Shown here: positions 1-33,793 of the stretch, piece by piece
How positions within the stretch are numbered: the stretch's first letter is position 1
Layout of the letters: every line of letters starts with the position of its first letter
DNA from: Azolla caroliniana
Lineage: Eukaryota; Plantae; Polypodiophyta
Direction of reading: 5' to 3'
DNA length: 64,000 nt
NCBI GenBank assembly: GCA_043228905.1
Contig: JBHGNT010000020.1
Coordinates: 2,852,001 to 2,916,000 of the forward strand
Position numbers and translations under genes: made by a program
Notes under the pieces: model-generated
What the model saw: only the letters and a program-made list of their open reading frames with translations
Told to the model about the DNA's origin: nothing
Database searches by the model: none

Positions 1-345
1 TAGAGCTTCAACATGTCGTAACTCCACGTTGTGTGCTTTAGAGTACAATTCCAATGGTACAAGCAAAATTTATTTGAGTCAATTCGAGAACGGCTTTTGA
101 CAAGACACGCTTTTTAACAATATTGCAGAAAATTGAATTAATATGAAGCTTTGCCCAAATGGACCGGTTTCATGGACAAGTGTCATTTGGATCTTACAAG
201 AAACGTAAGAGCACTATTGGTTTATTCAGGTAACAAATCGTAAAGATTCAATACTGAGGCTAATATACAATAACGCAGCGACAAATTTTTCTCGCACAGT
301 TTTCTTTCTGATTCTTTACGAATGCCTTGGAAATATGGCCATATT

Positions 346-417
346 GCGCTTGTAGTCCAACGGTTAGGATAATTGCCTTCCAAGCAATAGACCCGAGTTC
401 AACTCTCGGCAAGCACA
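346..417 (+). tRNA. tRNA-Gly-TCC: tRNA-Gly(TCC), acceptor-stem mismatch variant
   Basis: 72-nt cloverleaf, anticodon loop CT-TCC-AA; 3' end reads CAAGCAC. Confidence 0.8.
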
Positions 418-683
418 TACTATGTTATTTGAATCGCTACATCCAACGGAAAAGAAAAAATGATTCAATTCCATTCCAGTCCAGAATGATACGTACCTTT
501 CAAATTTTCATAACTACAACGTAACAAGACAGCACCATAGTGATTTAATCTAAAGCTTTGCCAAAACAACTATTTCCCTGAACTAGTTTCATTTCTTTCT
601 TAGAATAAACTAAGGCCCAACTTTTTCTCACTCATGTGACAAATTGTAAAGATTAAGGGCTCACACTGATATGAGATATTAGT

Positions 684-755
684 GCGGTTGTAGTCTTATC
701 GTTAATGTATTTGCTTTGCAAGCAATAGATAGAGCTTCAACATGTCGTAACTCCA
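684..755 (+). pseudogene. Degenerate tRNA-Gly-derived copy (anticodon position TGC); one per unit, about 338 nt after each tRNA start
   Basis: Colinear with the tRNA over 72 nt, about 46/72 identical. D stem and T stem no longer pair. Confidence 0.85.
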
Positions 756-1074
756 CGTTGTGTGCTTTAGAGTAGAATTCCAATGGTACAAGCAAAATTT
801 ATTTCAGTCAATTCGAGAACGGCTTTTGAGAAGACACGCTTTTTAACAATATTGCAGAAAATTGAATTAATATGAAGCTTTGCTCAAATGGACCGTTTTC
901 ATGGACAAGTTTCATTTGGATCTTACAAGAAACGTAAGAGCACTATTGGTTTATTCAGGTAACAAATCGTAAAGATTCAATACTGAGGCTAATATACAAT
1001 AACTCAGCGACAAATTTTTCTCGCACATTTTTCTTTCTGATTCTTTACGAATGCCTTGGAAATATGGCCAAATT

Positions 1075-1146
1075 GCGCTTGTAGTCCAACGGTTAGGATA
1101 ATTGCCTTCCAAGCAATAGACCCGAGTTCAACTCTCGGCAAGCGCA
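1075..1146 (+). tRNA. tRNA-Gly-TCC: tRNA-Gly(TCC), array consensus
   Basis: GCGCTTG/CAAGCGC acceptor, GTCC/GGAT D stem, ATTGC/GCAAT anticodon stem, CCGAG-TTCAACT-CTCGG T arm. Confidence 0.95.
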
Positions 1147-1803
1147 TACTATGTTATTTGAATCACTGCATCCAACAGAAAAGAGAAAATGATTTAATTC
1201 CATTCCAGTCCAGAATGATACGTACCTTCCAAATTTTCATAACTACAGCGTAAGAAGACAACACCATAGTGATTTAATCTAAAGCTTTGCCAAAACAACT
1301 ATGTTCCTGAACTAGTTTCATTTCTTTTTTAGAATAAACTAAGGCCCAACTTTTTCTCACCCATGTGACAAATTGTAAAGATTAAGGGCTCACACTGATA
1401 TGAGATATTTGTGCGGTTGTAGTCTTATTGTTAATGTATTTGCTTTGCAAGCAATAGATAGAGCTTCAACATGTCGTAACTCCACGTTGTGTGCTTTAGA
1501 GTAGAATTCCAATGGTACAAGCAAAATTTATTTGAGTCACTTCGAGAACGGCTTTTGAGAAGACACGCTTTTTAACAATATTGCAGAAAATTGAATTAAT
1601 ATGAAGCTTTGCTCAAATGGACCGTTTTCATGGACTAGTTTCATTTGGATCTTACAAGAAACGTAAGAGCACTACTAGTTTATTCAGGTAACACATCGTA
1701 AAGTTTCAATGCTGAGGCTAATATACAATAACTTAGCGACCAATTTTTCTCGCACATTTTTCTTTCTGATTCTTTACGAATGCCTTGGAAAGATGGCCAA
1801 ATT

Positions 1804-1875
1804 GCGCTTGTAGTCCAACGGTTACGATCATTGCCTTCCAAGCAATAGACCCGAGTTCAACTCTCGGCAAGCGCA
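1804..1875 (+). tRNA. tRNA-Gly-TCC: tRNA-Gly(TCC), D-arm variant
   Basis: 2 substitutions relative to consensus. Confidence 0.75.
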
Positions 1876-2553
1876 TACTATGTTATTTGAATCACTACAT
1901 CCAACGGAAAAGAAAAAATGATTCAATTCCAATGCAGTCCAGAATGATACGTACCTTTCAAATTTTCATATGTACCTTTCAAATTTTCATATCTACAACG
2001 TAACAAGACAGCACCATAGTGATTTAATCTAAAGCTTTGCCAAAACAACTATTTTCCTGAACTAGTTTCATTTCTTCCTTAGAATAAACTAAATCCCAAC
2101 ATTTTCTCACTCATGTGACAAATTGTAAAGATTAAGGGCTCACACTGATATGAGATATTAGTGCGGTTGTAGTCTTATCGTTAATGTATTTGCTTTGCAA
2201 GCAATAGATAGAGCTTCAACATGTCGTAACTCCACGTTGTGTGCTTTAGAGTAGAATTCCAATGGTACAAGCAAAATTTATTTGAGTCAATTCGAGAACG
2301 GCTTTTGAGAAGACACGCTTTTTAACAATATTGCAGAAAATTGAATTAATATGAAGCTTTGCTCAAATGGACCGTTTTCATGGACTAGTTTCATTTGGAT
2401 CTTACAAGAAACGTAAGAGCACTATTGGTTTATTCAGGTAACAAATCGTAAAGATTCAATACTGAGGCTAATATACAATAACTCAGCGACAAATTTTTCT
2501 CGCACATTTTTCTTTCTGATTCTTTACGAATGCCTTGGAAATATGGCCAAATT

Positions 2554-2625
2554 GCGCTTGTAGTCCAACGGTTAGGATAATTGCCTTCCAAGCAATAGAC
2601 CCGAGTTCAACTCTCGGCAAGCGCA
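2554..2625 (+). tRNA. tRNA-Gly-TCC: tRNA-Gly(TCC), consensus
   Basis: Intact cloverleaf. Confidence 0.95.
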
Positions 2626-3303
2626 TACTATGTTATTTGAATCACTTCATCCAACGGAAAAGAAAAAATGATTCAATTCCAATGCAGTCCAGAATGATAC
2701 GTACCTTTCAAATTTTCATATGTACCTTTCAAATTTTCATAACTACAACGTAACAAGACAACACCATAGTGATTTAATCTAAAGCTTTGCCAAAACAACT
2801 ATTTCCCTGAACTAGTTTCATTTCTTTCTTAGAATAAACTAAGGCCCAACTTTTTCTCACTCATGTGACAAATTGTAAAGATTAAGGGCTCACACTGATA
2901 TGAGATATTTGTGCGGTTGTAGTCCTATAGTTAATGTATTTGCTTTGCAAGCAATAGATAGAGCTTCAACATGTCGTAACTCCACGTTGCGTGCTTTAGA
3001 GTAGAATTCCAATGGTATAAGCAAAATTTATTTGAGTCAATTCGAGAACGGCTTTTGACAAGACACGCTTTTTAACAATATTGCAGAAAATTGAATTAAT
3101 ATGAAGCTTTGCTCAAATGGACCGTTTTCATGGACAAGTGTCATTTGGATCTTACAAGAAACGTAAGAGCACTATTGGTTTATTCAGGTAACAAATCGTA
3201 AAGATTCAATACTGAGGCTAATATACAATAACTCAGCGACAAATTTTTCTCGCACATTGTTCTTTCTGATTCTTTACGAATGCCTTGAAAATATGGCCAA
3301 ATT

Positions 3304-3375
3304 GCGCTTGTAGTCCAACGGTTAGGATAAATGCCTTCCAAGCAATAGACCCGAGTTCAACTCTCGGCAAGCGCA
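3304..3375 (+). tRNA. tRNA-Gly-TCC: tRNA-Gly(TCC), anticodon-stem mismatch
   Basis: ATTGC changed to AATGC. Confidence 0.75.
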
Positions 3376-4032
3376 TACTATGATATTTGAATCACTACAT
3401 CCAACGGAAAAGAAAAAATGATTCAATTCCATTCCACTCCAGAATGATACGTACCTTTCAAATTTTCATAACTACAACGTAACAAGACAGCACCATAGTG
3501 ATTTAATCTAAAGCTTTGCCAAAACAACTATTTTCCTGAACTAGTTTCATTTCTTTCTTAGAATAAACTAAGGCCCAACTTTTTCTCACTCATGTGACAA
3601 ATTGTAAAGATTAAGGGCTCACACTGATATGAGATATTTGTGCGGTTGTAGTCCTATAGTTAATGTATTTGCTTTGCAAGCAATAGATAGAGCTTCAACA
3701 TGTCGTAACTCCACGTTGTGTGCTTTAGAGTACAATTCCAATGGTACAAGCAAAATTTATTTGAGTCAATTCGAGAACGGCTTTTGACAAGACACGCTTT
3801 TTAACAATATTGCAGAAAATTGAATTAATATGAAGCTTTGCTCAAATGGACCGTTTTCATGGACAAGTGTCATTTGGATCTTACAAGAAACGTAAGAGCA
3901 CTATTGGTTTATTCAGGTAACAAATCGTAAAGATTCAATACTGAGGCTAATATACAATAACTCAGCGACAAATTTTTCTCGCACATTTTTCTTTCTGATT
4001 CTTTACGAATGCCTTGGAAATATGGCCAAATT

Positions 4033-4104
4033 GCGCTTGTAGTCCAACGGTTAGGATAATTGCCTTCCAAGCAATAGACCCGAGTTCAACTCTCGGCAAT
4101 CGCA
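4033..4104 (+). tRNA. tRNA-Gly-TCC: tRNA-Gly(TCC), acceptor mismatch
   Basis: 3' end reads CAATCGC. Confidence 0.78.
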
Positions 4105-4761
4105 TACTATGTCATTTGAATCACTTCATCCAACGGAAAAGAAATAATGATTCAATTCCATTCCAGTCCAGAATGATACGTACCTTTCAAATTTTCATAA
4201 CTACAACGTAACAAGACAGCACCATAGTGATTTAATCTAAAGCTTTGCCAAAACAACTATTTTCCTCAACTAGTTTCATTTCTTTCTTAGAATAAACTAA
4301 GGCCCAACTTTTTCTCACTCATGTGACAAATTGTAAAGATTAAGGGCTCACACTGATATGAGATATTTGTGCGGTTGTAGTCCTATAGTTAATGTATTTG
4401 CTTTGCAAGCAATAGATAGAGCTTCAACATGTCGTAACTCCACGTTGTGTGCTTTAGAGTACAATTCCAATGGTACAAGCAAAATTTATTTGAGTCAATT
4501 CGAGAACGGCTTTTGACAAGACACGCTTTTTAACAATATTGCAGAAAATTGAATTAATATGAAGCTTTGCCCAAATGGACCGGTTTCATGGACAACTGTC
4601 ATTTGGATCTTACAAGAAACGTAAGAGCACTATTGGTTTATTCAGGTAACAAATCGTAAAGATTCAATACTGAGGCTAATATACAATAACTCAGCGACAA
4701 ATTTTTCTCGCACATTTTTCTTTCTGATTCTTTACGAATGCCTTGGAAATATGGCCAAATT

Positions 4762-4833
4762 GCGCCTGTAGTCCAACGGTTAGGATCATTGCCTTCCAAG
4801 CAATAGACCCGAGTTCAACTCTCGGCAAGCGCA
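4762..4833 (+). tRNA. tRNA-Gly-TCC: tRNA-Gly(TCC) variant
   Basis: 2 substitutions in the 5' half. Confidence 0.75.
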
Positions 4834-5490
4834 TACTATGTTATTTGAATCACTTCATCCAACGGAGAAGAAAAAATGATTCAATTCCATTCCAGTCCAG
4901 AATGATACGTACCTTTCAAATTTTCATAACTACAACGTAACAAGACAGCACCATAGTGATTTAATCTAAAGCTTTGCCAAAACAACTATTTTCCTGAACT
5001 AGTTTCATTTTTTTCTTAGAATAAACTAAGGCCCAACTTTTTCTCACTCATGTGACAAATTGTAAAGATTAAGGGCTCACACTGATATGAGATGTTAGTG
5101 CGGTTGTAGTCTTATCGTTAATGTATTTGCTTTGCAAGCAATAGATAGAGCTTCAACATGTCGTAACTCCACGTTGTGTGCTTTAGAGTAGAATTCCAAT
5201 GGTACAAGCAAAATTTATTTCAGTCAATTCGAGAACGGCTTTTGACAAGACACGCTTTTTAACAATATTGCAGAAAATTGAATTAATATGAAGCTTTGCT
5301 CAAATGGACCGTTTTCATGGACTAGTTTCATTTGGATCTTACAAGAAACGTAAGAGCACTATTGGTTTATTCAGGTAACAAATCGTAAAGATTCAATACT
5401 GAGGCTAATATACAATAACTCAGCGACAAATTTTTCTCGCACATTTTTCTTTCTAATTCTTTACGAATGCCTTGGAAATATGGCCAAATT

Positions 5491-5562
5491 GCGCTTGTTG
5501 TCCAACGGTTAGGATAATTGCCTTCCAAGCAATAGACCCGAGTTCAACTCTCGGCAAGCGCA
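5491..5562 (+). tRNA. tRNA-Gly-TCC: tRNA-Gly(TCC) variant
   Basis: A9>T. Confidence 0.8.
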
Positions 5563-5788
5563 TACTATGTTATTTGAATCACTACATCCAACGAAAAAGA
5601 GAAAATGATTCAATTCCATTCCAGTCCAGAATGATACGTACCTTTCAAATTTTCATAACTACAACGTAACAAGACAGCACCATAGTGATTTAATCTAAAG
5701 CTTTGCCAAAACAACTATTTTCCTGAACTAGTTTCATTTTTTTCTTAGAATAAACTAAGGCCCAACATTTTCTCACTCATGTGACAAA

Positions 5789-7062
5789 ATTCTTGCATTT
5801 TTTCCACAAGGAGGTGACTAGACGACAATGGTGGGCCTATTTTATACGATCCGACAGGAGGCAGGGGAAAGCATTCCCCAATTCGTCATCCGTTTCTAAC
5901 GAATGCATAGCCAGCTTGCCCGTACACCCCCGGAGGAGGAATTACGGACGATATTTTTAAACGCACTCTGGGAACCGTTACGCACGGTGTGTACGGTAAT
6001 CGACTTTCGAGGAAGCACCATTGACCAGGTCATTGACCGGGTCAGAGAAATGGAAAAGTCAAGCTCATGGCTTACATTGGGAGCACTGCAACGGGCGTTA
6101 CCCACCGATGAAGATCTCCGGTTCCGGCAGGCAATTCAATGCACAATCTGCTTGAATGCCGGACACTCGGCAGTGGAATGCACCATGCGAACTCAGTGTG
6201 TGATTTGTCAATCCAAGAGTCATACAACGGACCGGTGCGAGTATAACCTGTTAAACCGACAAGCACCACCCGTCCGACGGATCGAGCCAAGAAGCAGCCG
6301 AGACGAAGATGACGATCGTTGGCAAAGAATGAACCGGTACCGACCGGCACAGGATGTCCGGTACGGAGACAGACAAGAGAATGATGGCCGGTACGGGAAT
6401 CGGCATGATAACTACGACCGGTATGAGCGATCGGACCGTTATCGGGAGTCCAACAGACGACACGAGCAATACGACAGAGACCATTCCCCTAGTTACCGAA
6501 GGCACCAGGAGGACTACGGCCGATTTTACGATCCACCACGACCGGACTACCGAAATAAAAATAAGAATAATAAGAAACGTAATTTCAAGAAAGGTGGTCA
6601 CACTAGGGACCCGGAACATGGAACCCCAAGGAGCCAACCGGCACAGAACGCACCACTCACTACGGGACCGACTCCGGATACCAGCAATGCTGAATCCAAC
6701 AATACCCGTAAAGAGTACTGTTATTACTGCAAGCAGGAAGGCCACTACAGTAACCAGTGCCCGGCAAAGAGCTACGATAAACGACTAGCAGTTAATATGG
6801 TGGTTCCGGAAGTGGCGGATATACAGCAAGTAACCACACGGTCGAAAGGCATGGCCAAAGAGTGGGAAACACAAGAGGCCATACGAAAACAGGCGACGGA
6901 ATGGGTGAAGGAAGCCAATGAAAGGAACGTCGCGGACGTGGAACGGCAAAAGGCGAATACCATAGGGAGTGCCGGCGGTAGCCACCCAGAAAACGAGACA
7001 TGGCAAGCACTGCAAGAATGTCAGATCACGTTGCCATTAGGAAGACTCTTGCAGCTCGTGCC
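5789..7062 (+). pseudogene. gag: Gypsy gag, 5' part (truncated, internal stop near 5897)
   Basis: RQEAGESIPQFVIRF motif, CCHC knuckles, QVTTRSK; interrupted by the copia. Confidence 0.85.
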
Positions 7063-7680
7063 TGTTGGGATTTCGGTCCCTCCGGATGGGATGTCCGGAG
7101 ATGAATGACGGCAAGCCCGGAGGCTGTTACGGAACCGTAGGATGAAGAGTACCCGGTTACGAAGCCGGATGCTGAAGACCCCGGTTACAGAGCCGGATGC
7201 CGTATGTACCCGGAGAGAGATCCAGATGCGGGGACATATCTGTGAATATGTTTGCCAAGGGCCCTTGAGGCTATATCTGTAAATAGCCCGAAAGTCATAT
7301 GTGTATAAATATGACTTAGGGCAAACAGTTTTGTGTAGTTGTTGCTCATTTTTCTGTTTTCCACTAAGAGGGAGCGAAGTGAGAGCAGCCGAGAGAGAGT
7401 GAGAGAGAAAGAGGAAGGAAGAGGTCGACGCCTCTGTGTAATACCGCCGCCTGTGGCGAGGACAGCGAGCTCAAGGTCGTCGCCTTGCAGCTCGCCATTG
7501 TACATTCCGCGTATAGTGATAGTTGGAGTCTTGCACTCCCGTGGTTTTTTCCCATTTAGGGTTTTCCACGTAAAACATCCAGTGTACCCTTCTCTCTATT
7601 GTTTTCGTGCATTGTTGTATTTCCCGTTTTCTGTGAATCGATCCTGTTCCTCGGTTGTGGCCGAGCACGGAATTTCGACA
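7063..7680 (+). repeat. Copia-1 5' LTR
   Basis: TGTTGGGA...TTCGACA; about 5 mismatches to the 3' LTR. Confidence 0.97.
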
Positions 7681-7683
7681 AAG

Positions 7684-7695
7684 TGGTATCAGAGC
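7684..7695 (+). promoter_or_regulatory. Primer-binding site (tRNA-iMet)
   Basis: TGGTATCAGAGC. Confidence 0.95.
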
Positions 7696-7711
7696 GACGG
7701 TAACACAGAAA

Positions 7712-10700
7712 ATGGAAGGCGGCAGCAGCGGGCAGCCGGGGATGATGGTGCTGAATGCGCAGAACTACGCCGACTGGAAGATAAAGATGGAGGATCTGCT
7801 CATTGTTCGGGACCTGTATGAACCGATCGACAGGTCGGAAATACCCAAGGGGGTACTTGAGACGGAGTGGAGGCTTCTGAACCGGAAAGCCGTTGCAACC
7901 ATTCGGCAATACGTCGACGTGAGCGTTCTACAACACGTGGCGAACGACACCAACGCATATGAGATGTGGAGGAAGCTGTCGGGCCTCTACGAGAGGAAGA
8001 ATGCGTTGAACCGGACCTCCCTGATGAGAAAGATAGTGAACCTCAAGTACCGGGACGGCGAGAGTATGGTGGAACACGTAAGCACGTTCATGGGATTCGT
8101 GAACCAGCTTGCGGCGATCAAGTTCCCGTTGGAGGATGCAATGCAAGCCATCATCCTGATGTGTACATTGCCGGACAGCTGGGAGAACTTGGTGGTGACT
8201 CTCAGCACCTCCTGCACCGAAGATAACTTGTCCCTACAAACGGTAAAGACAAGTATTTTGAACGAAGAAGCGCGTCAGAGAGATAAAGAACCGGCCTCCG
8301 ACTCGAAGGCGCTGCTTACCGAATCGGAACGGGGAAGACAATGGAACCGGAGTCCGCAAAGACGGGAGAAGTCGGGGACCCGGTCGCAGTCAAGAGGAAG
8401 ACCCACATGCTTCCACTGTGGGAAGCCGGGGCACTTCCGGAAGAATTGTCGGCATTACCGAAAAGACAACGGAGCCGACGACACCGATTCGAAGAAGTCA
8501 CCGGAGAGAAACGGTGCATACCGGGGAGCCACGGACCGGAGAGGTCCAGATCGGCGAGGGCAGGACCGGAAAGGAACGACGGCACTCGCGGCAAGTGAAG
8601 AGGAGATCATGCTCATCACCGAAGAAGGTGAACTAAACATTGCCGGCGATGAGACTACCTGGGTGGTCGATTCCGGAGCGTCGTTCCACCTGACCCCGGA
8701 AAGTAGATACTTCTCATCCTACACAGCCGGTGAACATGGCTGTGTTCGGATGGGAAATGAAGGTACGTGCCGGATTGCCGGCATAGGAGACGTATGGTTG
8801 ACAACCCCGACCGGATGCAAAATGCTGCTGAAGGATGTCCGACACGTTCCGGAGGTTCGATTGAACCTGATTTCGGCCGGGAGGCTAGACGATGAAGGCT
8901 ACACAGGTAGCATCCGGAACGGCGTAATGAAGTTCAGCAAGGGAAGCCTGATAGTGGCTCGGGCCCGGAAAGTCAACACACTGTACCTTATGAATGCCTG
9001 GTTGTGTCCGGAAGAGCTGAATGTGGCAGCCGACACTGCCGGTGAGCTGTGGCACAAAAGACTGTGCCACATGAGTGAGAAGGGGATGAAGAGGCTTGCA
9101 GAAGACAACCTTATTCCAGTGAAGCATGTGCACCTGGAGAACTGTACCGATTGCCTGGCCGGTAAGCAGAACCGAACCTCCTTCCACTCAAGGCCACCGA
9201 CGAGACGAAGCGCACCATTGGAGTTGGTGCACACTGATGTGTGTCAGGTAGAAACGAAGTCACATGGCGGAGCCTAGTACTTCGTGACTTTCATTGATGA
9301 TCACAGCCGGAAGCTGTGGACGGCACCGTTGAAGACAAAGGACCAAGTGTTGTCCGTCTTCAAAGAACTCCACGCGAGAGTGGAAAGAGAATCCGGCAAG
9401 AAGCTGAAAGCGATACGAGCGGATAACGGAGGAGAATACCGGGGGCAGTTCGCGGAGTACTGTCGCTCGAAGGGAATCCGGCTCGAGTTTACTGTGCCGA
9501 AGACGCCGGAACTGAACGGGCTGGCCGAGAGGATGAACCGGACCATAATGGAGAGGGTCCGGAGTATGCTAGCGCATGCGAAATTACCCAAGGGGTTTTG
9601 GGCTGAGGCGATGTCGACGGCGACATACGTGATAAATAGATCACCCTCAGTACCTTTGGACGGAGACACGCCGCAGAGAGTGTGGACCGGTAGGGAAGTG
9701 TCCTACCGGCATCTGAAGGTGTTCGGGTGCCTCGCATATGTGCATGTGGCTAAGGACCGGAGAGGAAAGCTAGATCCAAAGACCCGGCCATGCATATTCC
9801 TCGGTTACGGCGATGACGAGTTCGGCTACCGAGTATGGGACCCGGTCGACAAGAAGATATTCCGGAGTCGTGATATCATCTTCATGGAGAACAAGACACT
9901 TGCCGACTGGGAGTCGGAGAAGAAGATGAAGAGCTCCAAGTCGACCGGTGAGGATCAACTCTACGAGGAGCAGTCCCGACCGGCAAGAGACCGGTTAGCA
10001 CTCGAGGATCCGGCCGAAGACGGTGAAGAAACAGAACCGGCCGAAGAAGATGAAAATGATACCGGAACCGGCCCCGATCCCGAAATGGATTCGGATGAAG
10101 AAGAATCGGAAGAACCGGTTACCGAAGCTCCGGAACGGAGATATCCTCTAAGAGAGAGAAGGGCCCCCCGGAGATTTCCGGAACCAGAGCACGTGCTGCT
10201 AACCGACGAAGGGGAGCCGGAGAGCTTTGAAGAAGCAAAGCATGACACCCAGAGCCGCAGGTGGTTGAGTGCCATGCAGGACGAGATGGATTCCCTGCAT
10301 GAGAACCACACATATGAACTTGTGGAGTTGCCGAAAGGAAAGCGGGCACTTCGAAACAAGTGGGTGTTCAAGTTGAAACCGGGAGATGCCGAAAACCCCC
10401 CGAGATACAAAGCCAGGATCGTGGTGAAGGGGTTTCAGCAGAAGAAGGGCGTCGACTTCGACGAGATATTTGCCCCGGTAGTGAAGATGACCTCCATCCG
10501 GACGGTGCTGAGCATAGCGGCAAGCATGGACCTCGAGGTAGAACAAATGGACGTGAAGATGGCATTCCTTCATGGTGACCTCGAAGAAGAGATCTACATG
10601 CAGCAACCGGAAGGATTCGAGAAGAAAGGGAAGGAGCACCTGGTATGCCGGTTGAAGAAGAGCCTTTACGGACTGAAGCAGGCTCCCCGGCAATGGTACC

Positions 10701-23887: not shown

Positions 23888-25557
23888 AGGCGGGTGGCAA
23901 GGAGATGGAGAATCAACAAGAGGCGATGAACATGATGATGATGATGTTCGAGAGAATGCTACAAGAACAACGCGAGATGTCGGAGATCACGACAGTAGTA
24001 CAACGGCTCGTGCAACAGAACGGGCAATTCGATGGAAAGGACGTGTCACGCTATCTACGTGACTACAAAATGGAGATGTTGCGATATGGTATCTCAGAAA
24101 GATTGCAAGTGTTATCTTTCAACCGGGTGGCTACGGATGAGCTTCAAGAGAGAATCCACGAGATACGACAACAAAGCCCGATGTGGGAGTCCTTTGAAGA
24201 AGCTATACGAGACACATATGACTATCTAAGACCGAAGCGGACGAGGACATGGTCCACGAACGGCGGTCAACAGTGGGTGAAAAGCGGCCACCGACTACCA
24301 CCGAAGGAGAGCTTGATGCGGAAGGGTTCGGAGATGCATGAAAAGTCGCAAGTCGACATTGAAGGGGAGCTTAAAACCGAACCAAAGTCGAGGCCAACAA
24401 AGGACGAGGAGGAGGAAGATCGAGGACGAAAGGGTATCCCCACACCGGTTCCAGAGACTTCGGCGGCTGTGCCCGTGCACCAACGTGAGACTGGAGAGAC
24501 GGAATGTGTCGGTGGAAAAGTGGAGGACCGGAAGGGCAACGAGGAAGACAAAGTAAATGAGCACGAACGAAGGGATTCCTTCACCATTGTTTCGGAGACT
24601 TCGGTACTGGAGCCCGGGTGTCGACATAACACCGAAGATAAGGAAAGTGGCGGCAACGAAACGAAGGTCGAAGCCGATGCATACGAAGGAGAGATAGCCA
24701 AGGAGAACATGGCTATGGGTGAAACAACGGAAGATGATAATACCGAGGATTCCTACCCACTAATTCTAGAGACTTCGGCGGTTGTGTCCGAGAACCAACG
24801 TGAGACCGGAGAGACGGGAGGTGGCAACAAGGAAGGTAAAGTCGGAAGCCGGTTCGGATGGAAGATGATCCGTATGAAATTCCGATGTAAACAAAAGCAT
24901 GACAACGCGAAGGTCGAGTCTACGATGGGAGAAGCATGTAATACGGAGCACGCACTACGGCACCAAAAGAAGCACGTGCTACGGCGTAAAGAGAAGCACA
25001 CGCTACGGCGCAAAAAGAAGCACATGCTACGGTGCAAAAATAAGCATGCACTACGGGGTAATACGGCGCATGCACTACGATGGAATACGAAGCATGCGCT
25101 ACGGCCTAATACGACGCATGCGCAACATCGAGAAATAAAGCATGCATTAAAGCCGCACAAGGACCTAACAGCGAGCGCGTATTCGGAGGTCGACATCGAC
25201 GCGTGGGTAGAACCTACGGAAGACAAGCGCGGAGTGGAGAGAGACAACACACCGAGATGCTCAAGAGTACCACAAGGGACCATGACAACCACTCATGGCA
25301 ATGCAAAGAATGAACAAAGAATATGGTGGATCGGATGGCGACAATGGTTCGGGTGGAAAGAATGGGTCTACTCAAAATGGAGAGACAAAGTTGACATAGC
25401 GGGACAAACGGAGGATGAAGGGGAGACAACGAGCATCGGCAACTTCGGCACATACCGGAGGATGTGCGGGTTCGGAGGGGGCGAGTGTCGTAGTGTATTT
25501 CGTACACTACGTGAAAAAGTAAAAAATAATATAACCGATTTAATTACATATAAATAA
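23884..25557 (+). CDS. Gag-like protein with a repetitive C-terminal region (likely ATG about 23905)
   Basis: Open 557-aa ORF; gag-like start FDGKDVSRYLRDY...WESFEEAI; runs into the 3' LTR. Confidence 0.7.
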   Translation: MKAGGKEMENQQEAMNMMMMMFERMLQEQREMSEITTVVQRLVQQNGQFDGKDVSRYLRDYKMEMLRYGISERLQVLSFNRVATDELQERIHEIRQQSPMWESFEEAIRDTYDYLRPKRTRTWSTNGGQQWVKSGHRLPPKESLMRKGSEMHEKSQVDIEGELKTEPKSRPTKDEEEEDRGRKGIPTPVPETSAAVPVHQRETGETECVGGKVEDRKGNEEDKVNEHERRDSFTIVSETSVLEPGCRHNTEDKESGGNETKVEADAYEGEIAKENMAMGETTEDDNTEDSYPLILETSAVVSENQRETGETGGGNKEGKVGSRFGWKMIRMKFRCKQKHDNAKVESTMGEACNTEHALRHQKKHVLRRKEKHTLRRKKKHMLRCKNKHALRGNTAHALRWNTKHALRPNTTHAQHREIKHALKPHKDLTASAYSEVDIDAWVEPTEDKRGVERDNTPRCSRVPQGTMTTTHGNAKNEQRIWWIGWRQWFGWKEWVYSKWRDKVDIAGQTEDEGETTSIGNFGTYRRMCGFGGGECRSVFRTLREKVKNNITDLITYK

Positions 25558-25589
25558 ATAAAATAATATATCAAGATATTTATCACGTG

Positions 25590-25659
25590 CATAGGGCAGG
25601 ATTTGAACCCTGTACCTCCACATAGCCAAACCTCAACTTTACCATTATGCTACCTTATC
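25590..25659 (-). ncRNA. tRNA-like Pol III cassette in the 3' LTR
   Basis: A box TAGCATAATGG; consensus B box GGTTCAAATCC. Confidence 0.6.
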
Positions 25660-26385
25660 TTTAGTGTTCTATAAATAGATTTAATAACTATAACTGCTTT
25701 ATTTGCGCCTACCTTTATTAAAAAGGTAAATCGTGCATTTTTAGAGTGCGTGAATATTTTATAGAAAAACGCAAGCAACTAAAAAGTGACTCATGCACAT
25801 CTAGCGTGCATGAGCACTATATTTAGCAAATAAAAGCAAGGATTAGAAAAGCATCACATGCACATTTAGTGTGCATGAACATATTAGAAAAAAAAAGCAT
25901 GTAGCTATGCTTAGTCTCTCCCATCACTACATAAGGATGGGGAGCACAATGTAATAGGTGTGTGAAAAATATTTGGGAAATTGGATATATTTCCTAAAAC
26001 ACCAACAATCAATAAAATATACTCGTGGGATTCACGAAGTTTAAGATAATCTATCTCTTTCAATCTAAATTCATATTCTTACATAAATATTGATTAATGT
26101 AATACTTGTGGGATTCACAAGGTTTGATCTCTTTTCTCAATCTACTCTAATCTATTCTAAATTATTTCAATTTATTACTACGATTTAGATAAACTAAAAC
26201 AATTATACTTGTGGGATTCACAACTTTCTATATCTCTTTCTTATAATCTATTCATATTCATAACTAGTTTAGCCTCAAATTCTTCCTCCTCCTAGTCCAA
26301 AACCCCGGTGGTTCCCACCCGACTCACGCAAACGATCCGGAGCCGAAAGGCACGACAACGAATGCCTTGGAAATATGGCCAAATT

Positions 26386-26457
26386 GCGCTTGTCGTCCAA
26401 CGGTTAGGATAATTGCCTTCCAAGCAATAGACCCGAGTTCAACTCTCGGCAAGCGCA
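26386..26457 (+). tRNA. tRNA-Gly-TCC: tRNA-Gly(TCC) variant
   Basis: A9>C. Confidence 0.8.
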
Positions 26458-27114
26458 TACTATGTTATTTGAATCACTTCATCCAACGGAAAAGAAAAAC
26501 TGATTCAATTCCAATCCAGTCCAGATTGATACGTACGTTTCAAACTTTCATAACTAGAACGTAACAAGACAGCACCATAGTGATTTAATCTAAAGCTTTG
26601 CCAAAACAACTATTTTCCTCAACTAGTTTCATTTCTTCCTTAGAATAAACTAAGGCCCAACTTTTTCTCACTCATGTGACAAATTGTAAAGATTAAGGGC
26701 TCACACTGATATGAGATATTTGTGCGGTTGTAGTCTTATCGTTAATGTATTTTCTTTGCAAGCAATAGATAGAGCTTCAACATGTCGTAACTCCACGTTG
26801 TGTGCTTTAGAGTAGAATTCCAATGGTACAAGCAAAATTTATTTCAGTCAATTCGAGAACAGCTTTTGACAAGACACGCTTTTGAACAATATTGTAGAAA
26901 ATTGAATTAATATGAAGCTTTCCTTAAATGGACCGTTTTCATGGACTAGTTTCATTTGGAACTTACAAGAAACGTAAGAGCACTATTGGTTTATTCAGGT
27001 AACAAACCGTAAAGTTTCAATACTGAGGCTAATATACAATAACTCAGCGACAAATTTTTCTCGCACATTTTTCTTTCTGATTCTTTACGAATGCCTTGGA
27101 AATATAGCCAAATT

Positions 27115-27186
27115 GCGCTTGTAGTCCAACGGTAACGATAATTGCCTTCCAAGCAATAGACCCGAGTTCAACTCTCGGCAAGCGCA
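27115..27186 (+). tRNA. tRNA-Gly-TCC: tRNA-Gly(TCC), D-arm variant
   Basis: D arm reads GGTAACGAT. Confidence 0.72.
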
Positions 27187-27842
27187 TACTATGTTATTTG
27201 AATCACTTCATCCAACGGAAAAGAAAAAATGATTCAATTCCAATCCAGTCCAGAATGATACATACCTTTCAAATTTTCATAACTACAACGTAACAAGACA
27301 GCACCATAGTGATTTAATCTAAAGCTTTGCCAAAACAAATATTTTCCTCAACTAGTTTCATTTCTTTCTTAGAATAAACTAAGGCCCAACTTTTTCTCAC
27401 TCATGTGACAAATTGTAAAGATTAAGGGCTCACACTGATATGAGATATTAGTGCGGTTGTAGTCTTATAGTTAATGTATTTGCTTTGCAAGCAATAGATA
27501 GAGCTTCAACATGTCGTAACTCCACGTTTTGTGCTTTAGAGTAGAATTCCAATGGTACAAGCAAAATTTATTTCAGTCAATTCGAGAACAGCTTTTGACA
27601 AGACACGTTTCTTAACAATATTGCAGAAAATTGAATTAATATGAAGCTTTGTCAAATGGACCGTTTTCATGGACTTGTTTCATTAGGATCTTACAAGAAA
27701 TGTAAGAGCACTACTGGTTTATTCAGGTAACAGATCGTAAAGATTCAATACTGAGGCTAATATACAATAACTCAGCGACAAAGTTTTCTCACACATTTTT
27801 CTTTCTGATTCTTTACGAATGCCTTGGAAATATGGCCAAATT

Positions 27843-27914
27843 GCGCTTGTAGTCCAACGGTTAGGATAATTGCCTTCCAAGCAATAGACCCGAGTTCAAC
27901 TCTCGGCAAGCGCA
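27843..27914 (+). tRNA. tRNA-Gly-TCC: tRNA-Gly(TCC), consensus
   Basis: Intact cloverleaf. Confidence 0.95.
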
Positions 27915-28570
27915 TACTATGTTATTTGAATAACTACATCCAACGGAAAAGAAAAAATGATTCAATTCCATTCCAGTCCAGAATGATACGTACCTTTCAA
28001 ATTTTCATAACTAGAACGTAACAAGACAGCACCATAGTGATTTAATCTAAAGCTTTACCAAAACAACTATTTTCCTCAATTAGTTTCATTTCTTTCTTAG
28101 AATAAACTAAGGCCCAACTTTTTCTGACTCATGTGACAATTTGTAAAGATTAAGGGCTCACACTGATATGAGATATTTGTGCGGTTGTAGTCTTATAGTT
28201 AATGTATTTGCTTTGCAAGCAATAGATAGAGCTTCAACATGTCGTAACTCCACGTTGTGTGCTTTAGAGTAGAATTCCAATGGTACAAGCAAAATTTATT
28301 TCAGTCAATTCGAGAACAGCTTTTGACAAGACACGTTTCTTAACAATATTGCAGAAAATTGAATTGATATGAAGCTTTGTCAAATGGACCGTTTTCATGG
28401 ACTTGTTTCATTAGGATCTTACAAGAAACGTAAGAGCACTACTGGTTTATTCAGGTAACAGATCGTAAAGATTCAATACTGAGGCTAATATACAATAACT
28501 CAGCGACAAAGTTTTCTCACACATTTTTCTTTCTGATTCTTTACGAATGCCTTGGAAATATGGCCAAATT

Positions 28571-28642
28571 GCGCTTGTAGTCCAACGGTTAGGATAATTG
28601 CCTTCCAAGCAATAGACCCGAGTTCAACTCTCGGCAAGCGCA
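28571..28642 (+). tRNA. tRNA-Gly-TCC: tRNA-Gly(TCC), consensus
   Basis: Intact cloverleaf. Confidence 0.95.
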
Positions 28643-29299
28643 TACTATGTTATTTGAATCACTACATCCAACGGAAAAGAAAAAATGATTCAATTCCATT
28701 CCAGTCCAGAATGATACGTACCTTTCAAATTTTCATAACTAGAACGTAACAAGACAGCACCATAGTGATTTAATCTAAAGCTTTACCAAAACAACTATTT
28801 TCCTCAATTAGTTTCATTTCTTTCTTAGAATAAACTAAGGCCCAACTTTTTCTGACTCATGTGACAATTTGTAAAGATTAAGGGCTCACACTGATATGAG
28901 ATATTTGTGCGGTTGTAGTCTTATAGTTAATGTATTTGCTTTGCAAGCAATAGATAGAGCTTCAACATGTCGTAACTCCACGTTGTGTGCTTTAGAGTAG
29001 AATTCCAATGGTACAAGCAAAATTTATTTCACTCAATTCGAGAACGGCTTTTGACAAGACACACTTTTTAACAATATTGCAGAAAATTGAATTAATATGA
29101 AACTTTGCTCAAATGGACCGTTTTCATGGACTAGTTTCATTTGGATCTTACAAGAAACGTAAGAGCACTATTGGTTTATTCAGGTAACAAATCGTAAAGA
29201 TTCAATAATCAGGCTAATATACAATAACTCAGCGAAAAAATTTTCTCGCACATTTTTCTTTCTGATTCTTTACGAATGCCTTGTAAATATGGCCAAATT

Positions 29300-29371
29300 G
29301 CGCTTGTAGTCCAACGGTTAGGATAATTGGCTTCCAAGCAATAGACCCGAGTTCAACTCTCGGCAAGCACA
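29300..29371 (+). tRNA. tRNA-Gly-TCC: tRNA-Gly(TCC) variant, possibly pseudo
   Basis: Anticodon-stem and acceptor mismatches. Confidence 0.65.
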
Positions 29372-30027
29372 TACTATGTTATTTGATGCACTTCATCCAA
29401 CGGAAAAGAAAAAATGATTCAATTCCATTCCAGTCCAGAATGATACGTACCTTTCAAATTTTCATAACTACAACGTAACAAGACAACACCATAGTGATTT
29501 AATCTAAAGCTTTGCCAAAACAACTATTTTCCTGACCTAGTTTCATTACTATCTTAGAATAAACTAAGGCCCAACTATTTCTCACTTATGTGACAAATTG
29601 TAAAGATTAAGGGCTCACACTGATATGAGATATTTGTGCGGTTGTAGTCTTATCGTTAATATATTTGCTTTGCAAGCAATAGATAGAGCTTCAACATGTC
29701 GTTAATGCACATTGTGTGCTTTAGAGTAGAATTCCAATAGTACAAGCAAAATTTATTTCAGTCATTTCGAGAACGGCTTTTGACAAGAAACGCTTTTTAA
29801 CAATATTGCAGAAAATGAATTAATATGAAGCTTTCCTCAAATGGACCGTTTTCATGGACTAGTTTCATTTGGATCTTACAAGAAACGTAAGAGCACTATT
29901 GGTTTATTCAGGTAACAAATCGTAAAGATTCAATACTGAGGCTAATATACAATAACTCAGCGACAAATTTTTCTCGCACATTTTTCTTTCTGATTCTTTA
30001 CGAATGCCTTGGAAATATGGCCAAATT

Positions 30028-30099
30028 GCGCTTGTCGTCGAACGGTTAGGATAATTGCCTTCCAAGCAATAGACCCGAGTTCAACTCTCGGCAAGCGCA
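30028..30099 (+). tRNA. tRNA-Gly-TCC: tRNA-Gly(TCC), A-box variant
   Basis: 2 substitutions. Confidence 0.7.
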
Positions 30100-30756
30100 T
30101 ACTATGTTATTTGAATCACTTCATCCAACGGAAAAGAAAAAATGATTCAATTCCATTCCAGTCCAGAATGATACGTACCTTTCAAATTTTCATAACTACA
30201 ACGTAACAAGACAACACCATAGTGATTTAATCTAAAGCTTTGCCAAAACAACTATTTTCCTGACCTAGTTTCATTTCTATCTTAGAATAAACTAAGGCCC
30301 AACTTTTTCTCACTTATGTGACAAATTGTAAAGATTAAGGCCTCATACTGATATGAGATATTTTTGCGGTTGTAGTCCTATGGTTAACGTATTTGCTTTG
30401 CAAGCAATAGATAGAGCTTCAACATGTCGTAAGTGCACATTGCTTGCTTTAGAGCAGTATTCCAATGGGACAAGCAAAATTTATTTCAGTCAATTCGAGA
30501 ACGGCTTTTCACAGGACACGCTTTTTAAGAATATTGCAGAAAATTGAATTAATATGAAGCTTTGCTGAAATGGACCGTTTTCAAGGACTAGTTCCATTTG
30601 GATCTTACAAGAAACGTAAGAGCACTATTGGTATATTCAGGTAACAAATCGTAAAGATTCAATACTGAGGCTAATATACAATAACTCGGCGACAAATTTT
30701 TCTCGCACATTTTTCATTCTAATGGTTTACGAATCCCTTGGAAATATGGCCAAATT

Positions 30757-30828
30757 GCGATTGTAGTCCAACGGTTAGGATAATTGCCTTCCAAGCAATA
30801 GACCCGAGTTCAACTCTCGGCAAGCGCA
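30757..30828 (+). tRNA. tRNA-Gly-TCC: tRNA-Gly(TCC), acceptor mismatch
   Basis: 5' end reads GCGATTG. Confidence 0.78.
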
Positions 30829-31485
30829 TACTATGTTATTTGAATCCGTGCATCCAACGGAAAAGAAAAAATGATTCAATTCCATTCCAGTCCAGAATGA
30901 TACGTACCTTTCAAATTTTCATAACTAGAACGTAACAAGACAGCACCATACTGATTTAATCTAAAGCTTTGCCAAAACAACTATTTTCCTCAACTAGTTT
31001 CATTTTTATCTTAGAATAAACTAAGGCCCAACTTTTTCTCACTCATGTGTCAAATTGTAAAGATTAAGGGCTCACACTGATATGAGATATTTTTGCGGTT
31101 GTAGTCTTATAGTTAATGAATTTGCTTTGCAAGCAATAGATAGAGCTTCAACATGTCGTAACTCCACGTTGTATGCTTTAGAGTAGAATTCCAATGGTAC
31201 AAGCAAAATTTATTTCAGTCAATTCGAGAACGGCTTTTGACAAGACACGCTTTTTAACAATATTGCAGAAAATTGAATTAATATGAAGCTTTGCTTAAAT
31301 GGACCGTCTTCGAGGACTAGTTTCATTTGGATCTTACAAGAAATGTAAGAGCACTATTGGTTTATTCAGGTAGTAAATCGTAAAGATTCAATACTGAGGC
31401 TAATATACAATAACTCAGCGACAAATTTTTCTCGCACATTTTTCTTTCTGATTCTTTACGAATGCCTTGGAAATATGGCCAAATT

Positions 31486-31557
31486 GCGCTTGTAGTCCAA
31501 CGGTTAGGATAATTGCCTTCCAAGCAATAGACCCGAGTTCATCTCTCGGCAAGCGCA
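31486..31557 (+). tRNA. tRNA-Gly-TCC: tRNA-Gly(TCC), B-box variant
   Basis: T loop reads TTCATCT. Confidence 0.68.
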
Positions 31558-32214
31558 TACTATGTTATTTGAATCCGTGCATCCAACGGAAAAGAAAAAA
31601 TGATTCAATTCCATTCCAGTCCAGAATGATACGTACCTTTCAAAATTTCATAACTAGATCGTAACAAGACAGCACCATACTGATTTAATCTAAAGCTTTG
31701 CCAAAACAACTATTTTCCTGAACTAGTTTCATTTTTATCTTAGAATAAACTAAGGCCCAACTTTTTCTCACTCATGTGTCAAATTGTAAAGATTAAGGGC
31801 TCACACTGATATGAGATATTTTTGCGGTTGTAGTCTTATAGTTAATGTATTTGCTTTGCAAGCAATAGATAGAGCTTCAACATGTCGTAACTCCACGTTG
31901 TATGCTTTAGAGTAGAATTCCAATGGTACAAGCAAAATTTATTTCAGTCAATTCGAGAACGGCTTTTGACAAGACACGCTTTTTAACAATATTGCAGAAA
32001 ATTGAATTAATATGAAGCTTTGCTCAAATGGACCGTTTTCATGGACTAGTTCCATTTGTATCTTACAAGAAACGTAAGAGCACTATTGGTTTATTCAGGT
32101 AACAAATCGTAAAGATTCAATACTGAGGCTAATATACAATAACTCGGCGACAAATTTTTCTCGCACATTTCTCTTTCTAATTGTTTACGAATCCCTTGGA
32201 AATATGTCCAAATT

Positions 32215-32286
32215 GCGCTTGTAGTCCAACTGTTAGGATAATTGCCTTCCAAGCAATAGACCCGAGTTCAACTCTCGGCAAGTGCA
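32215..32286 (+). tRNA. tRNA-Gly-TCC: tRNA-Gly(TCC) variant
   Basis: 2 substitutions. Confidence 0.7.
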
Positions 32287-32962
32287 TACTATGTTATTTG
32301 AATCACTACATCCAACGGAAAAGAAAAAATGATTCAATTCCATTCCAGTCCAGAATGATACGTACCTTTCAAATTTTCATAACTAGAACGTAACAAGACA
32401 GCACCATAGTGATATAATCTAAAGCTTTGCCAAAACAACTATTTTCCTCAACTAGTTTCATTTCTATCTTAGAATAAACTAAGGCCCAACTTTTTCTCAC
32501 TCATGTGACAAATGTTAAAGATTAAGACAAATGTTAAAGATTAAGGGCTCACACTGATATGAGATATTTGTGCGGTTGTAGTCCTATGGTTAATGTATTT
32601 GCTTTGCAAGCAATAGATAGAGCTTCAACATGTCGTAAGTGCACATTGCTTGCTTTAGAGTAGTATTCCAATGGGACAAGCAAAATTTATTTCAGTCAAT
32701 TCGAGAACGGCTTTTGACAAGACAAGTTTTTTAACAATATTATAGAAAATTGAATTAATATGAAGCTTTGCTCAAATGGACCGTTTTCATGGACTAGTTT
32801 CATTTGGATCTTACAAGAAACATAAGAGCACTATTGGTTTATTCAGGTAACAAATCGTAAAGATTCAATACTGAGGCTAATATACAATAACTCAGCCACA
32901 AATTTTTCTGGCACATTTTTCTTTCTGATTCTTTACGAATGCCTTGGAAATATGGCCAAATT

Positions 32963-33034
32963 GCGCTTGTAGTCCAACGGTAACGATAATTGCCTTCCAA
33001 GCAATAGACCCGAGTTCAACTCTCGGCAAGCGCA
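32963..33034 (+). tRNA. tRNA-Gly-TCC: tRNA-Gly(TCC), D-arm variant with a deletion in the 3' trailer
   Basis: GGTAACGAT; about 47 bp missing downstream. Confidence 0.7.
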
Positions 33035-33793
33035 TAATTCCATTCCAGTCCAGAATGATACGTACCTTTCAAATTTTCATAACTAGAACGTAACAAGACA
33101 GCACCATAGTGATTTAATCTAAAGCTTTGCCAAAACAACTATTTTCCTCAACTAGTTTCATTTCTATCTTAGAATAAACTAAGGCCCAACTTTTTCTCAC
33201 TCATGTGACAAATGTTAAATATTAAGGGCTCACACTGATATGAGATATTTGTGCGGTTGTAGTCCTATGGTTAATGTATTTGCTTTGCAAGCAATAGATA
33301 GAGCTTCAACATGTCGTAAGTGCACATTGCTTGCTTTAGAGTAGTATTCCAATGGGACAAGCAAAATTTATTTCAGTCAATTCGAGAACGGCTTTTGACA
33401 AGACAAGTTTTTTAACAATATTGCAGAAAATTGAATTAATATGAAACTTTGCTCAAATGGACCGTTTTCATGGACTAGTTTCATTTGGATCTTACAAGAA
33501 ACGTAAGAGCACTATGGGTTTATTCAGCACTATATATTTGACTCGATTCTAGAACGGCGTGTTAATTGACAAGTTTTATAGCTATATTGTAGGAAATTCT
33601 CCAAAATTGATTTAATATGAAACTCTACTCAAATAGGCCGTTTTCATGGACTAGTTTCATTTGTATCTTAGAAGAAACTTAGGAGCATTATTGGTTTATT
33701 TAGATAACAAATAGTAAATATTCAATACTAAGGTTAATATGCAATAAGTGAGGAAGGAATTGTTTACGAGTCCCTTGGATATGTTCTTAAATT

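Follow-up and report, generated by a model that had tools for sequence, protein, structure and literature searches.

Results

The window, that is, the whole 64-kb stretch of Azolla caroliniana DNA analyzed here, carries a tandem array of tRNA genes. Between 345 and 33035, ARAGORN predicted 23 tRNA-Gly(tcc) genes, all in the + orientation, and it predicted a 24th gene at 36614. The Rfam covariance model RF00005, whose gathering score is 29, assigned 59.9–71.4 bits to all 23 array genes and matched weaker remnants at 36614, 33794, 35176, and 38254. The start-to-start distance was mostly 729 bp, with three spacings of 728, two of 750 (a 21-bp duplication), and one of 748 bp, whereas insertions account for two large gaps (13,999 and 3,980 bp). 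The initial annotation had described at least 23 head-to-tail tRNA-Gly(TCC) genes in a 729-bp repeat at 1–33527, and gene prediction, covariance model, and spacing agree with it. Its counts were also reproduced: exactly 6 of the 23 copies are identical to the consensus and 23/23 carry the TCC anticodon. A CAA motif, said to precede the cloverleaf in every unit, is present at −6 to −4 in 22 of the 23 copies, and copy 346 has CAT instead. Since window position 1 falls inside a unit (consensus position 385 of 729), the array extends past the window start, as had been proposed. However, it does not end at 33527; a decayed edge further on had been missed, as had the dimeric nature of the unit with its dead tRNA.

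The array lies in three segments, all on the + strand. Segment 1 (1..5788; ARAGORN, Rfam, and unit alignment) begins with a partial unit, after which come eight tRNA-Gly(TCC) genes starting at 346, 1075, 1804, 2554, 3304, 4033, 4762, and 5491, and its final unit is cut off at consensus position 298. Segment 2 (19371..23110) contains five genes (19490, 20219, 20948, 21677, and 22406). Segment 3 (26358..33527) contains ten (26386 to 32963), and its last unit is only 89% like the consensus. The net array length within the window is approximately 17 kb. Array units have a mean likeness of 95%, and the edge is 70–89% identical to the consensus. A homocluster is defined as at least five tRNA genes of the same isotype within 5 kb, arranged head to tail (PMC13437025); seven tRNA-Gly genes fall within 5 kb of the present array, each in the + orientation. 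As in a higher-order-repeat satellite, the unit is composed of diverged sub-monomers and the interior is more uniform than the edge.

Three retrotransposon insertions, counting a nested one, occupy the two interruption sites. Insertion 1 (5789..19370, +) is a Ty3/gypsy-type element with a gag zinc knuckle, RT-RNase H, and integrase, and holds a nested Ty1/copia element, the LTRs of which (7063–7362 and 11796–12095) are 99% identical. The insertion site lacks unit consensus positions 299–610. A search for outer LTRs of the gypsy-type element found none, which points to truncation of the element or rearrangement of the site. Insertion 2 (23111..26357, +) is a 3.25-kb LTR element with TG..CA ends, the target duplication ACGA, and LTRs of about 750 bp that are 91–98% identical. 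It is located 25–28 nt upstream of the tRNA at 26386. Beyond segment 3, the decayed and scrambled edge of the same satellite occupies 33528..39456 (+). Its tRNA remnants differ from the consensus at 5 (33794), 7 (35176), 3 (36614), and 17 (38254) positions, and the 333-bp monomers at 38073–39446 all carry dead tRNAs.

The gene at 1075..1146 (+; Rfam, 71.4 bits) represents the exact consensus, and identical copies start at 2554, 19490, 22406, 27843, and 28571. Each of the 21 stem pairs in the consensus is of a standard type. Glycine identity in eukaryotes is set by A73, C2:G71, G3:C70, C35, and C36. The consensus sequence carries each of these elements, and single copies lose some of them, e.g., G70A at 346 and 29300. 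The gene has both internal promoter boxes, A and B, with their invariant bases; those of the B box (G53, T54, T55, C56, A58, and C61) are retained, and the 52:62 pair (A:T) and position 57 (A) are both of an allowed type. The gene presumably differs from its angiosperm counterpart by pair swaps at 4:69, 5:68, and 52:62, and by A57; the initial annotation took the acceptor- and T-stem differences to be compensatory. The initial proposal of descent from a real tRNA is borne out: the array is built on a cytosolic-type tRNA-Gly(UCC) gene, and every one of the 23 copies passed the covariance model. Single copies are less intact. Variants in the array include A9C in four copies, A9T in a fifth, G22C with T20A, and G70A. 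Ten of the 23 copies have an unpaired stem position, and there are no compensatory double changes within the array.

The 729-bp unit is dimeric, pairing a live tRNA with a dead one, and its two halves align over their whole length. The dead copy is present in every unit (consensus about 339–412; e.g., 1413..1486, +), has no Rfam match, carries TGC at the anticodon position, and has lost the B-box G53. An upstream block of about 65–70 nt (e.g., 1734..1803, +) precedes every live tRNA and is absent before the dead tRNAs. It contains the AT-rich motif GGAAATATGG and the CAA at −6 to −4. The same division is found in all families and the 333-bp monomers: a short spacer precedes dead tRNAs and the long upstream block precedes live ones.

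The predicted primary transcript (e.g., 1070..1159, +) comprises AARTT at −5 to −1, the tRNA, and 13 nt of trailer with GTTATTT at its end. This block is the sole part common to sister families and other genomic contexts. In DNA contigs under two organism labels, it lies within other flanks with the limits 1069/1070 and 1158/1159, coinciding with the predicted transcript, and its summed depth in contigs, which gives no copy number, is approximately 30-fold that of the spacer. No run of at least four T was found within 25 nt 3' of the tRNA gene. The first TTTT lies approximately 84 nt past the gene, and the only nearer candidate is TTATTT at +8 to +13, which is kept in all families. Runs of at least four T are often missing in non-angiosperm land plants (PMC13437025). 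A conserved trailer RNA covering the 84 nt to the first TTTT was rejected because identity between families falls to the spacer level beyond about +19.

Two sister families of the satellite, L001 and L002, are carried by two metagenome contigs. L001 consists of a 713-bp dimer, and its tRNA is identical to that of the array at 72/72 positions, a comparison that is partly ascertained because both contigs were retrieved with a 33-nt tRNA pattern that had to match exactly; the 39 nt at the start of the tRNA, which lie outside this pattern, are also identical. The trailer agrees at 12/13 positions, whereas the spacers are only 58–60% and the dead tRNA 63% identical. L002 consists of 377-bp monomers with spacers 58–60% identical to those of the array, and its three tRNAs, subject to the same ascertainment, have no difference, one difference, and a decayed sequence matching at 64/72. 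The spacers of all three families are homologous end to end. Conservation between families also covers the 5 nt directly upstream of the tRNA and the GTTATTT motif of the trailer. The spacer contains a conserved dyad, in which one C:G pair has been exchanged for G:C between families, a compensatory change. Within L001, 67 nt of neighboring partial tRNAs, likewise outside the search pattern, are identical, whereas the adjacent spacers are only 90.7% alike. Since their spacers are approximately 40% diverged, we consider the three families to be old.

The same contrast was observed within the window, free of selection by the search pattern. The tRNAs of the edge copies at 33794, 35176, and 36614 are 90–96% identical to the consensus, against 69–78% over the 400-nt flank (P from 1e-4 to 2e-5; these and the following P values are approximate because changes are shared by descent). 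Within the array, the live tRNA had 23 changes against 38 expected after correction for base context (approximate P 0.006). The deficit lay in the 3' half with the B box (5 changes against 19.5 expected; approximate P 1e-4), while the 5' half mutated at the spacer rate. The dead tRNA had 52 changes against 35 expected with the same correction. GC-to-AT changes were in twofold excess within the array, and C-to-T changes per site-copy amounted to 2.6% in CG, 2.2% in CHG, and 1.1% in CHH contexts.

Discussion

The present results make it probable that the array is made up of cytosolic tRNA-Gly(UCC) genes of the RNA polymerase III type, which form one branch of a multi-family satellite and evolve in the manner of 5S rDNA. 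The array anatomy and the contrast between a constant gene and diverged spacers are demonstrated; we read this contrast, from sequence comparisons, as purifying selection at the family level with single copies free to decay. Among the roles suggested initially, a dosage reservoir or working gene array is the best-fitting guess because the tRNA is identical across families despite approximately 60% spacer identity. Broken and uncompensated stems in 10/23 copies, the spacer-like mutation rate of the 5' half of the tRNA, the insertions, the methylation-like bias, and the distant TTTT were counted against a working array.

Each 729-bp unit probably descends from an ancestral monomer of about 335–390 bp by dimerization. 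The first half retains the intact tRNA, while the tRNA of the second half has lost the approximately 65-nt upstream block and has decayed. In the proposed mechanism, TFIIIC would be recruited by the A and B boxes inside the gene, and TFIIIB would occupy the AT-rich block upstream of it; transcription would start near the CAA at −6 to −4 and stop at the conserved GTTATTT at +7 to +13. The resulting pre-tRNA of approximately 90 nt would be processed to a tRNA reading GGA and GGG. Variants would spread within arrays by unequal crossing-over and gene conversion, and we infer that arrays or variants with an altered tRNA consensus are eliminated by selection acting through tRNA function; such selection would therefore hold the gene fixed while the spacers diverge freely. 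Damaging mutations may pile up in single copies because the copies are highly redundant.

In Arabidopsis, tRNA clusters show heavy CG methylation and are silent in most tissues (PMC7544208). Because of this precedent, the C-to-T and GC-to-AT bias of the Azolla array may be the mutational trace of a similar methylation. Together, the transposon insertions and the methylation-like bias suggest at least partial silencing of the array. As an alternative, the array could be an inert satellite of silent genes, in which the tRNA appears conserved through repeated overwriting by conversion from a few working dispersed genes or after recent amplification of all families from intact masters. We regard this explanation as unlikely, although it accommodates the broken stem pairs, none of which is compensated, the insertions, the mutation spectrum, and the silence of the Arabidopsis clusters. 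A search of sequencing runs with the unit also fits it: holders were found among DNA runs only and no RNA holder appeared (two presumed RNA runs gave zero contigs), a result that is neutral on expression. Working genes dispersed over the rest of the genome may themselves have maintained the conservation through gene conversion. However, the tRNA consensus is still identical at every position between families that are old, and the dead tRNA in each unit escaped rescue by conversion and drifted at the spacer rate. Moreover, a process driven by the mature tRNA would preserve neither the 5 nt upstream nor the GTTATTT trailer, both of which are kept.

The tRNA sequence may instead serve as a protein-binding site, rather than as a source of tRNA, in a structural DNA element, either a (peri)centromeric satellite or a chain of TFIIIC-bound boundaries. 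Such a role would suit three observations: the array has the tandem, higher-order organization of a satellite and decays at its edge; the best-kept part of the tRNA within the array is the 3' half with the B box, which is the main TFIIIC site; and the spacer has a conserved dyad with a compensatory change. Nevertheless, we consider it improbable. Conservation covers all 72 positions, including the acceptor stem, anticodon, and discriminator base, none of which TFIIIC binding needs, and extends to the trailer motif. Furthermore, the array is short in net length and broken by transposons, and 185–195-bp repeats were proposed to be centromeric in Azolla and Salvinia (Li et al. 2018, PMC6786969). 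The chromatin boundary and pericentromeric roles suggested in the initial annotation are unsupported. A tRNA-derived SINE or other retroposed element that was later tandemly amplified is the most improbable origin. The block common to different flanks is the predicted Pol III primary transcript, as a retroposed pre-tRNA would look. However, the full-length tRNA retains its 3' acceptor strand intact, the units abut head to tail, and the tRNA block lacks both an A-rich or LINE-like tail and a flanking target duplication. The spacers of all three families are homologous throughout, which indicates that the whole monomer was duplicated as DNA.

The Azolla array has close parallels among known gene arrays. 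It looks like an ordinary kind of plant tRNA cluster, seemingly kept for use rather than junk. The likeness noted initially is confirmed, the head-to-tail design being that of the Arabidopsis Pro and Ser-Tyr-Tyr clusters. We compared it with the Arabidopsis tRNA-Pro homoclusters and Ser-Tyr-Tyr cluster, the maize Ile and Ala arrays, and the barley Gln arrays (Hummel 2020, PMC7544208; Hummel 2025, PMC12308677; Hummel 2026, PMC13437025; Monloy and Planta 2024, PMC11700998). These clusters and the Azolla array share a short head-to-tail unit with a nuclear tRNA gene, tens of copies, and homogeneous flanks, and, like some of them, the Azolla array has a transposon-rich setting and sequence signs of methylation. 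In contrast to them, it has a unit made of a live/dead tRNA dimer, no canonical run of at least four T after the gene, and several sister families of old origin, whose spacers have diverged around an identical gene. A Gly(UCC) cluster was not found in the literature on plant tRNA clusters that we searched, and chromosome-scale surveys of plant tRNA genes include no fern (PMC13578239, PMC13437025).

The 5S rDNA resembles the Azolla array in its workings, which does not imply membership. Each is a tandem series of internally promoted Pol III genes that tolerates pseudogenized units, and each combines a constant gene with a non-transcribed spacer that diverges rapidly between array families. The Azolla array differs in its gene and in its tRNA-type (type 2) promoter without TFIIIA. 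In Entamoeba arrays and Xenopus and zebrafish clusters, much of the tRNA gene set lies in tandem repeats, mostly of multi-isotype cassettes, whereas the Azolla unit contains a single isotype and its own pseudogene.

Reviews of plant tRNA genes describe clustering as limited in land plants and clustered genes as a silenced surplus (PMC13578239, PMC13437025). We tentatively raise the possibility, which we hold to be rather doubtful, that most or all tRNA-Gly(UCC) genes and many other isoacceptors in this fern reside in satellite-like arrays of working genes maintained by concerted evolution and selection. If so, ferns would be an exception to the view of dispersed land-plant tRNA genes with a silent clustered surplus, and working arrays would account for tRNA gene counts such as the approximately 7,500 reported for Azolla. 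The dead tRNA, after loss of the 65-nt upstream block, would then represent a natural promoter-deletion experiment in a non-seed plant. The pseudogene in the same unit provides a built-in neutral control beside an identical gene and approximately 40% diverged spacers, and the gene/spacer contrast offers clean evolutionary evidence that selection can act on tRNA genes in clusters. Array-private variants and the predicted transcript of approximately 90 nt are handles for studying how a non-seed plant uses Pol III promoters and terminators, with GTTATTT as a candidate non-canonical terminator.

Results

Gene content of the array

ARAGORN predicted 24 tRNA-Gly(tcc) genes on the plus strand of the window, 23 of which were located within 345-33035. 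The initial annotation, made from the sequence alone, had described at least 23 such genes with a 729-bp period, and the present analysis agreed. All 23 copies scored 59.9-71.4 bits against the Rfam tRNA covariance model (gathering score, 29), which upholds their tRNA identity, and the spacing between starts was mostly 729 bp (728 bp in three cases, 750 bp in two, and 748 bp in one), with the 750- and 748-bp spacings being due to internal duplications of 19-21 bp. Six copies were identical to the consensus and the TCC anticodon was kept throughout, as previously annotated. The CAA motif, originally placed ahead of the tRNA in every unit, was present at -6 to -4 in 22 of the 23 copies and missing from one. 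Since window position 1 corresponds to position 385 of the unit consensus, the array does extend past the window start.

The mean pairwise identity of complete units was 94.8%. Besides the six consensus copies, seven carried only changes at unpaired sites or changes that kept pairing, and ten had one or two broken stem pairs each. No compensatory double changes were detected among the 23 array copies. Candidate array-private variants are A9C, T20A together with G22C, G70A, and A26C. Weaker tRNA remnants were recognized by Rfam at 36614 (56.6 bits), 33794 (40.3 bits), 35176 (38.9 bits), and 38254 (32.6 bits).

Insertions and the decayed edge

A BLAST search of the window with the 729-bp consensus divided the array into three segments (1-5788, 19371-23110, and 26358-33527). 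The first interruption (5789-19370) is a Ty3/gypsy-type element encoding a zinc-knuckle gag, RT-RNase H, and integrase; we searched for its LTR pair and did not find one. Nested in it is a young Ty1/copia element, the LTRs of which (7063-7362 and 11796-12095) are 99% identical. Consensus positions 299-610 (312 bp) are absent from the array at this insertion, and the break points, one in each half-unit, are at homologous positions.

The second interruption (23111-26357) is an LTR element of 3.25 kb; it has TG..CA ends and LTRs of approximately 750 bp and is bordered by a 4-bp target duplication (ACGA). The single long ORF within it (23884-25557) had no Pfam match, and the LTRs contained no tRNA-like unit matching Rfam at the gathering score. 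The element precedes the tRNA at 26386 by 25-28 nt. This position resembles that of retrotransposons whose targets are upstream of Pol III genes, but it is a single event with a chance expectation of approximately 7%.

Downstream of the array, from 33528 to approximately 39456, the satellite is scrambled and 70-89% similar to the consensus. This decayed edge terminates in 333-bp monomers and is followed by further retrotransposons.

The dimeric unit

Positions 1-336 of the consensus align with positions 337-729 over the full length of both halves, and the second half opens with a decayed tRNA. The 729-bp unit is, therefore, a dimer of one intact (live) and one decayed (dead) tRNA copy. The dead tRNA has TGC at the anticodon place, has lost G53 of the B box, and has no Rfam tRNA match. 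The C35-to-G change is common to the dead copies; under the identity rules of GlyRS, this change alone would block charging.

A short spacer ending in GATATGAGATATTTGT precedes the dead tRNAs in the alignment of all families and the 333-bp monomers, and live tRNAs carry an additional 65-70 nt upstream in all families. Because the long form is common to monomeric and dimeric families, the short form is most simply explained as a deletion. It probably arose once and so counts as one event, with no statistical weight. The pattern fits a scenario in which upstream promoter context was lost and the dead copy then decayed neutrally.

Sister families

When metagenome contigs were scanned for exact matches to the final 33 nt of the tRNA, two were recovered: L001, which has a 713-bp dimeric unit with one live and one dead tRNA, and L002, which has 377-bp monomers. 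A multiple alignment placed all monomer types in one superfamily with homologous spacers. Between the array and L001, the tRNA was identical at 72/72 positions and the 13-nt trailer at 12/13, compared with 58-60% identity in the spacers and 63% in the dead tRNA. Spacers of the array and L002 were also 58-60% identical, and the three L002 tRNAs differed at 0, 1, and 8 positions, the last being a decayed copy. The 33-nt pattern selects for an intact 3' part; it placed no selection on the trailer, on the first 39 nt of the tRNA, or on 67 nt of neighboring partial L001 tRNAs. These 39 nt and 67 nt were also identical, although the neighboring L001 spacers were only 90.7% alike. In L002, unrelated sequence of approximately 700 bp separates two tRNA copies and interrupts the 377-bp array at approximately 640-1020 (plus strand); sister arrays, therefore, carry insertions too.

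DNA contigs of two organism labels span the whole unit. The segment from 1069/1070 to 1158/1159, which surrounds the live tRNA at 1075-1146, has a summed depth approximately 30-fold that of the spacer and runs on into other flanks, which match those of L001 and L002. The L001-like downstream flank and the L002-like upstream flank both occur in DNA contigs of both labels; therefore, the sister families are paralogues older than the label split.

The limits of this block, AARTT (-5 to -1) and GTTATTT (+7 to +13), are conserved in all families. The block would match a predicted Pol III primary transcript starting near CAA, within CAAATT at approximately -5, and stopping in the T-rich motif, within TTATTT at +8 to +13. 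No run of at least four T was found within 25 nt downstream of the tRNA; such runs are often lacking in land plants outside angiosperms (PMC13437025).

Within the spacers, conservation across all monomer types is highest in a dyad, GTTTC..TTCTA-N3-TAGAA..GAAAC, which occupies approximately 1309-1345 and 1631-1667 of the unit that begins at 1075 (consensus, approximately 235-270 and 557-592) and is also present in L001 and L002. Its inner stem is TTGTA/TACAA in the 377-bp family, a compensatory change from C:G to G:C. Within the satellite, the dyad could serve as a palindrome bound by a protein or as a site of cruciform formation.

Selection and mutation within the window

Evidence from the window itself is free of the selection imposed by the 33-nt pattern. 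Three copies in the decayed edge that kept the long upstream block (33794, 35176, and 36614) have tRNAs 90-96% identical to the consensus, compared with 69-78% for their 400-nt flanks (binomial P, 1e-4 to 2e-5). Using per-base-context mutation rates estimated from array spacers, we observed 23 changes in the live tRNA against 38 expected (P 0.006), and nearly all of this deficit was in the 3' half (5 against 19.5); these P values are all approximate, since changes inherited from a common ancestor do not count as independent. The dead tRNA had 52 changes against 35 expected.

Array substitutions showed a twofold GC-to-AT excess, and C-to-T changes per site-copy amounted to 2.2-2.6% at CG/CHG sites compared with 1.1% at CHH sites. 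Clustered tRNA genes in Arabidopsis are heavily CG methylated and silent in most tissues (PMC7544208), and the substitution bias of the array may have been left by comparable methylation.

Discussion

The array shows the pattern of 5S rDNA: the gene is identical across old families, the spacers move fast, the unit contains a neutral pseudogene control, and many single copies are damaged. We interpret this as concerted evolution combined with purifying selection that acts on the gene at the family level, with selection per copy being nearly nil. Based on this likeness and on family-level selection, we regard the array as probably consisting of real Pol III tRNA-Gly(UCC) genes in use now or recently. 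The live/dead dimer, the sister families with a strictly conserved gene and predicted transcript limits, and the decayed edge take this reading beyond the initial annotation.

The main alternative, an inert satellite with a tRNA refreshed through conversion from postulated dispersed working genes, appears rather unlikely: such conversion did not rescue the dead tRNA of the same unit, and the flanking motifs are conserved along with the tRNA. A structural role as a centromere or boundary is improbable, since TFIIIC boxes alone would suffice for it and would not call for all 72 positions. The least credible explanation, with hardly any weight in our assessment, is a SINE origin; homology spans the whole monomer, and there are neither tails nor target duplications.

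The array has counterparts in the plant homoclusters of Arabidopsis (Pro), maize (Ile and Ala), and barley (Gln), which are arrays of the same kind. Homoclusters are defined by at least five genes within 5 kb (PMC13437025), a density found here, and the array is a further case. Fern genomes are absent from the chromosome-scale surveys of plant tRNA genes (PMC13437025), and no description of a tRNA array in any fern, or of a Gly(UCC) cluster, was found in our literature search. The Azolla/Salvinia genome paper gives only 185-195-bp repeats as putative centromeres (PMC6786969). For Azolla, the literature reports approximately 7,500 tRNA genes along with over 10,000 tRNA-like sequences and does not offer arrays as an explanation.

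Other features of the flank

The retrotransposon-rich flank contains a GC-rich 54-61-bp tandem repeat of approximately six copies (43753-44104). An interstitial telomere-like run of approximately six CCCTAA units (58279-58315) adjoins other short repeats (58103-58643). At 61041-61151, where the sequence is AT-rich, Rfam matched the plant C/D box snoRNA Z103 (45 bits; gathering score, 44); tandem duplications of 119-135 bp lie nearby (61400-61640 and 63458-63843). The sole non-transposon protein signal seen in the flank was an ORF at 58460-59197 with an Ssb-like OB-fold domain (Pfam PF21473, E 6e-18).
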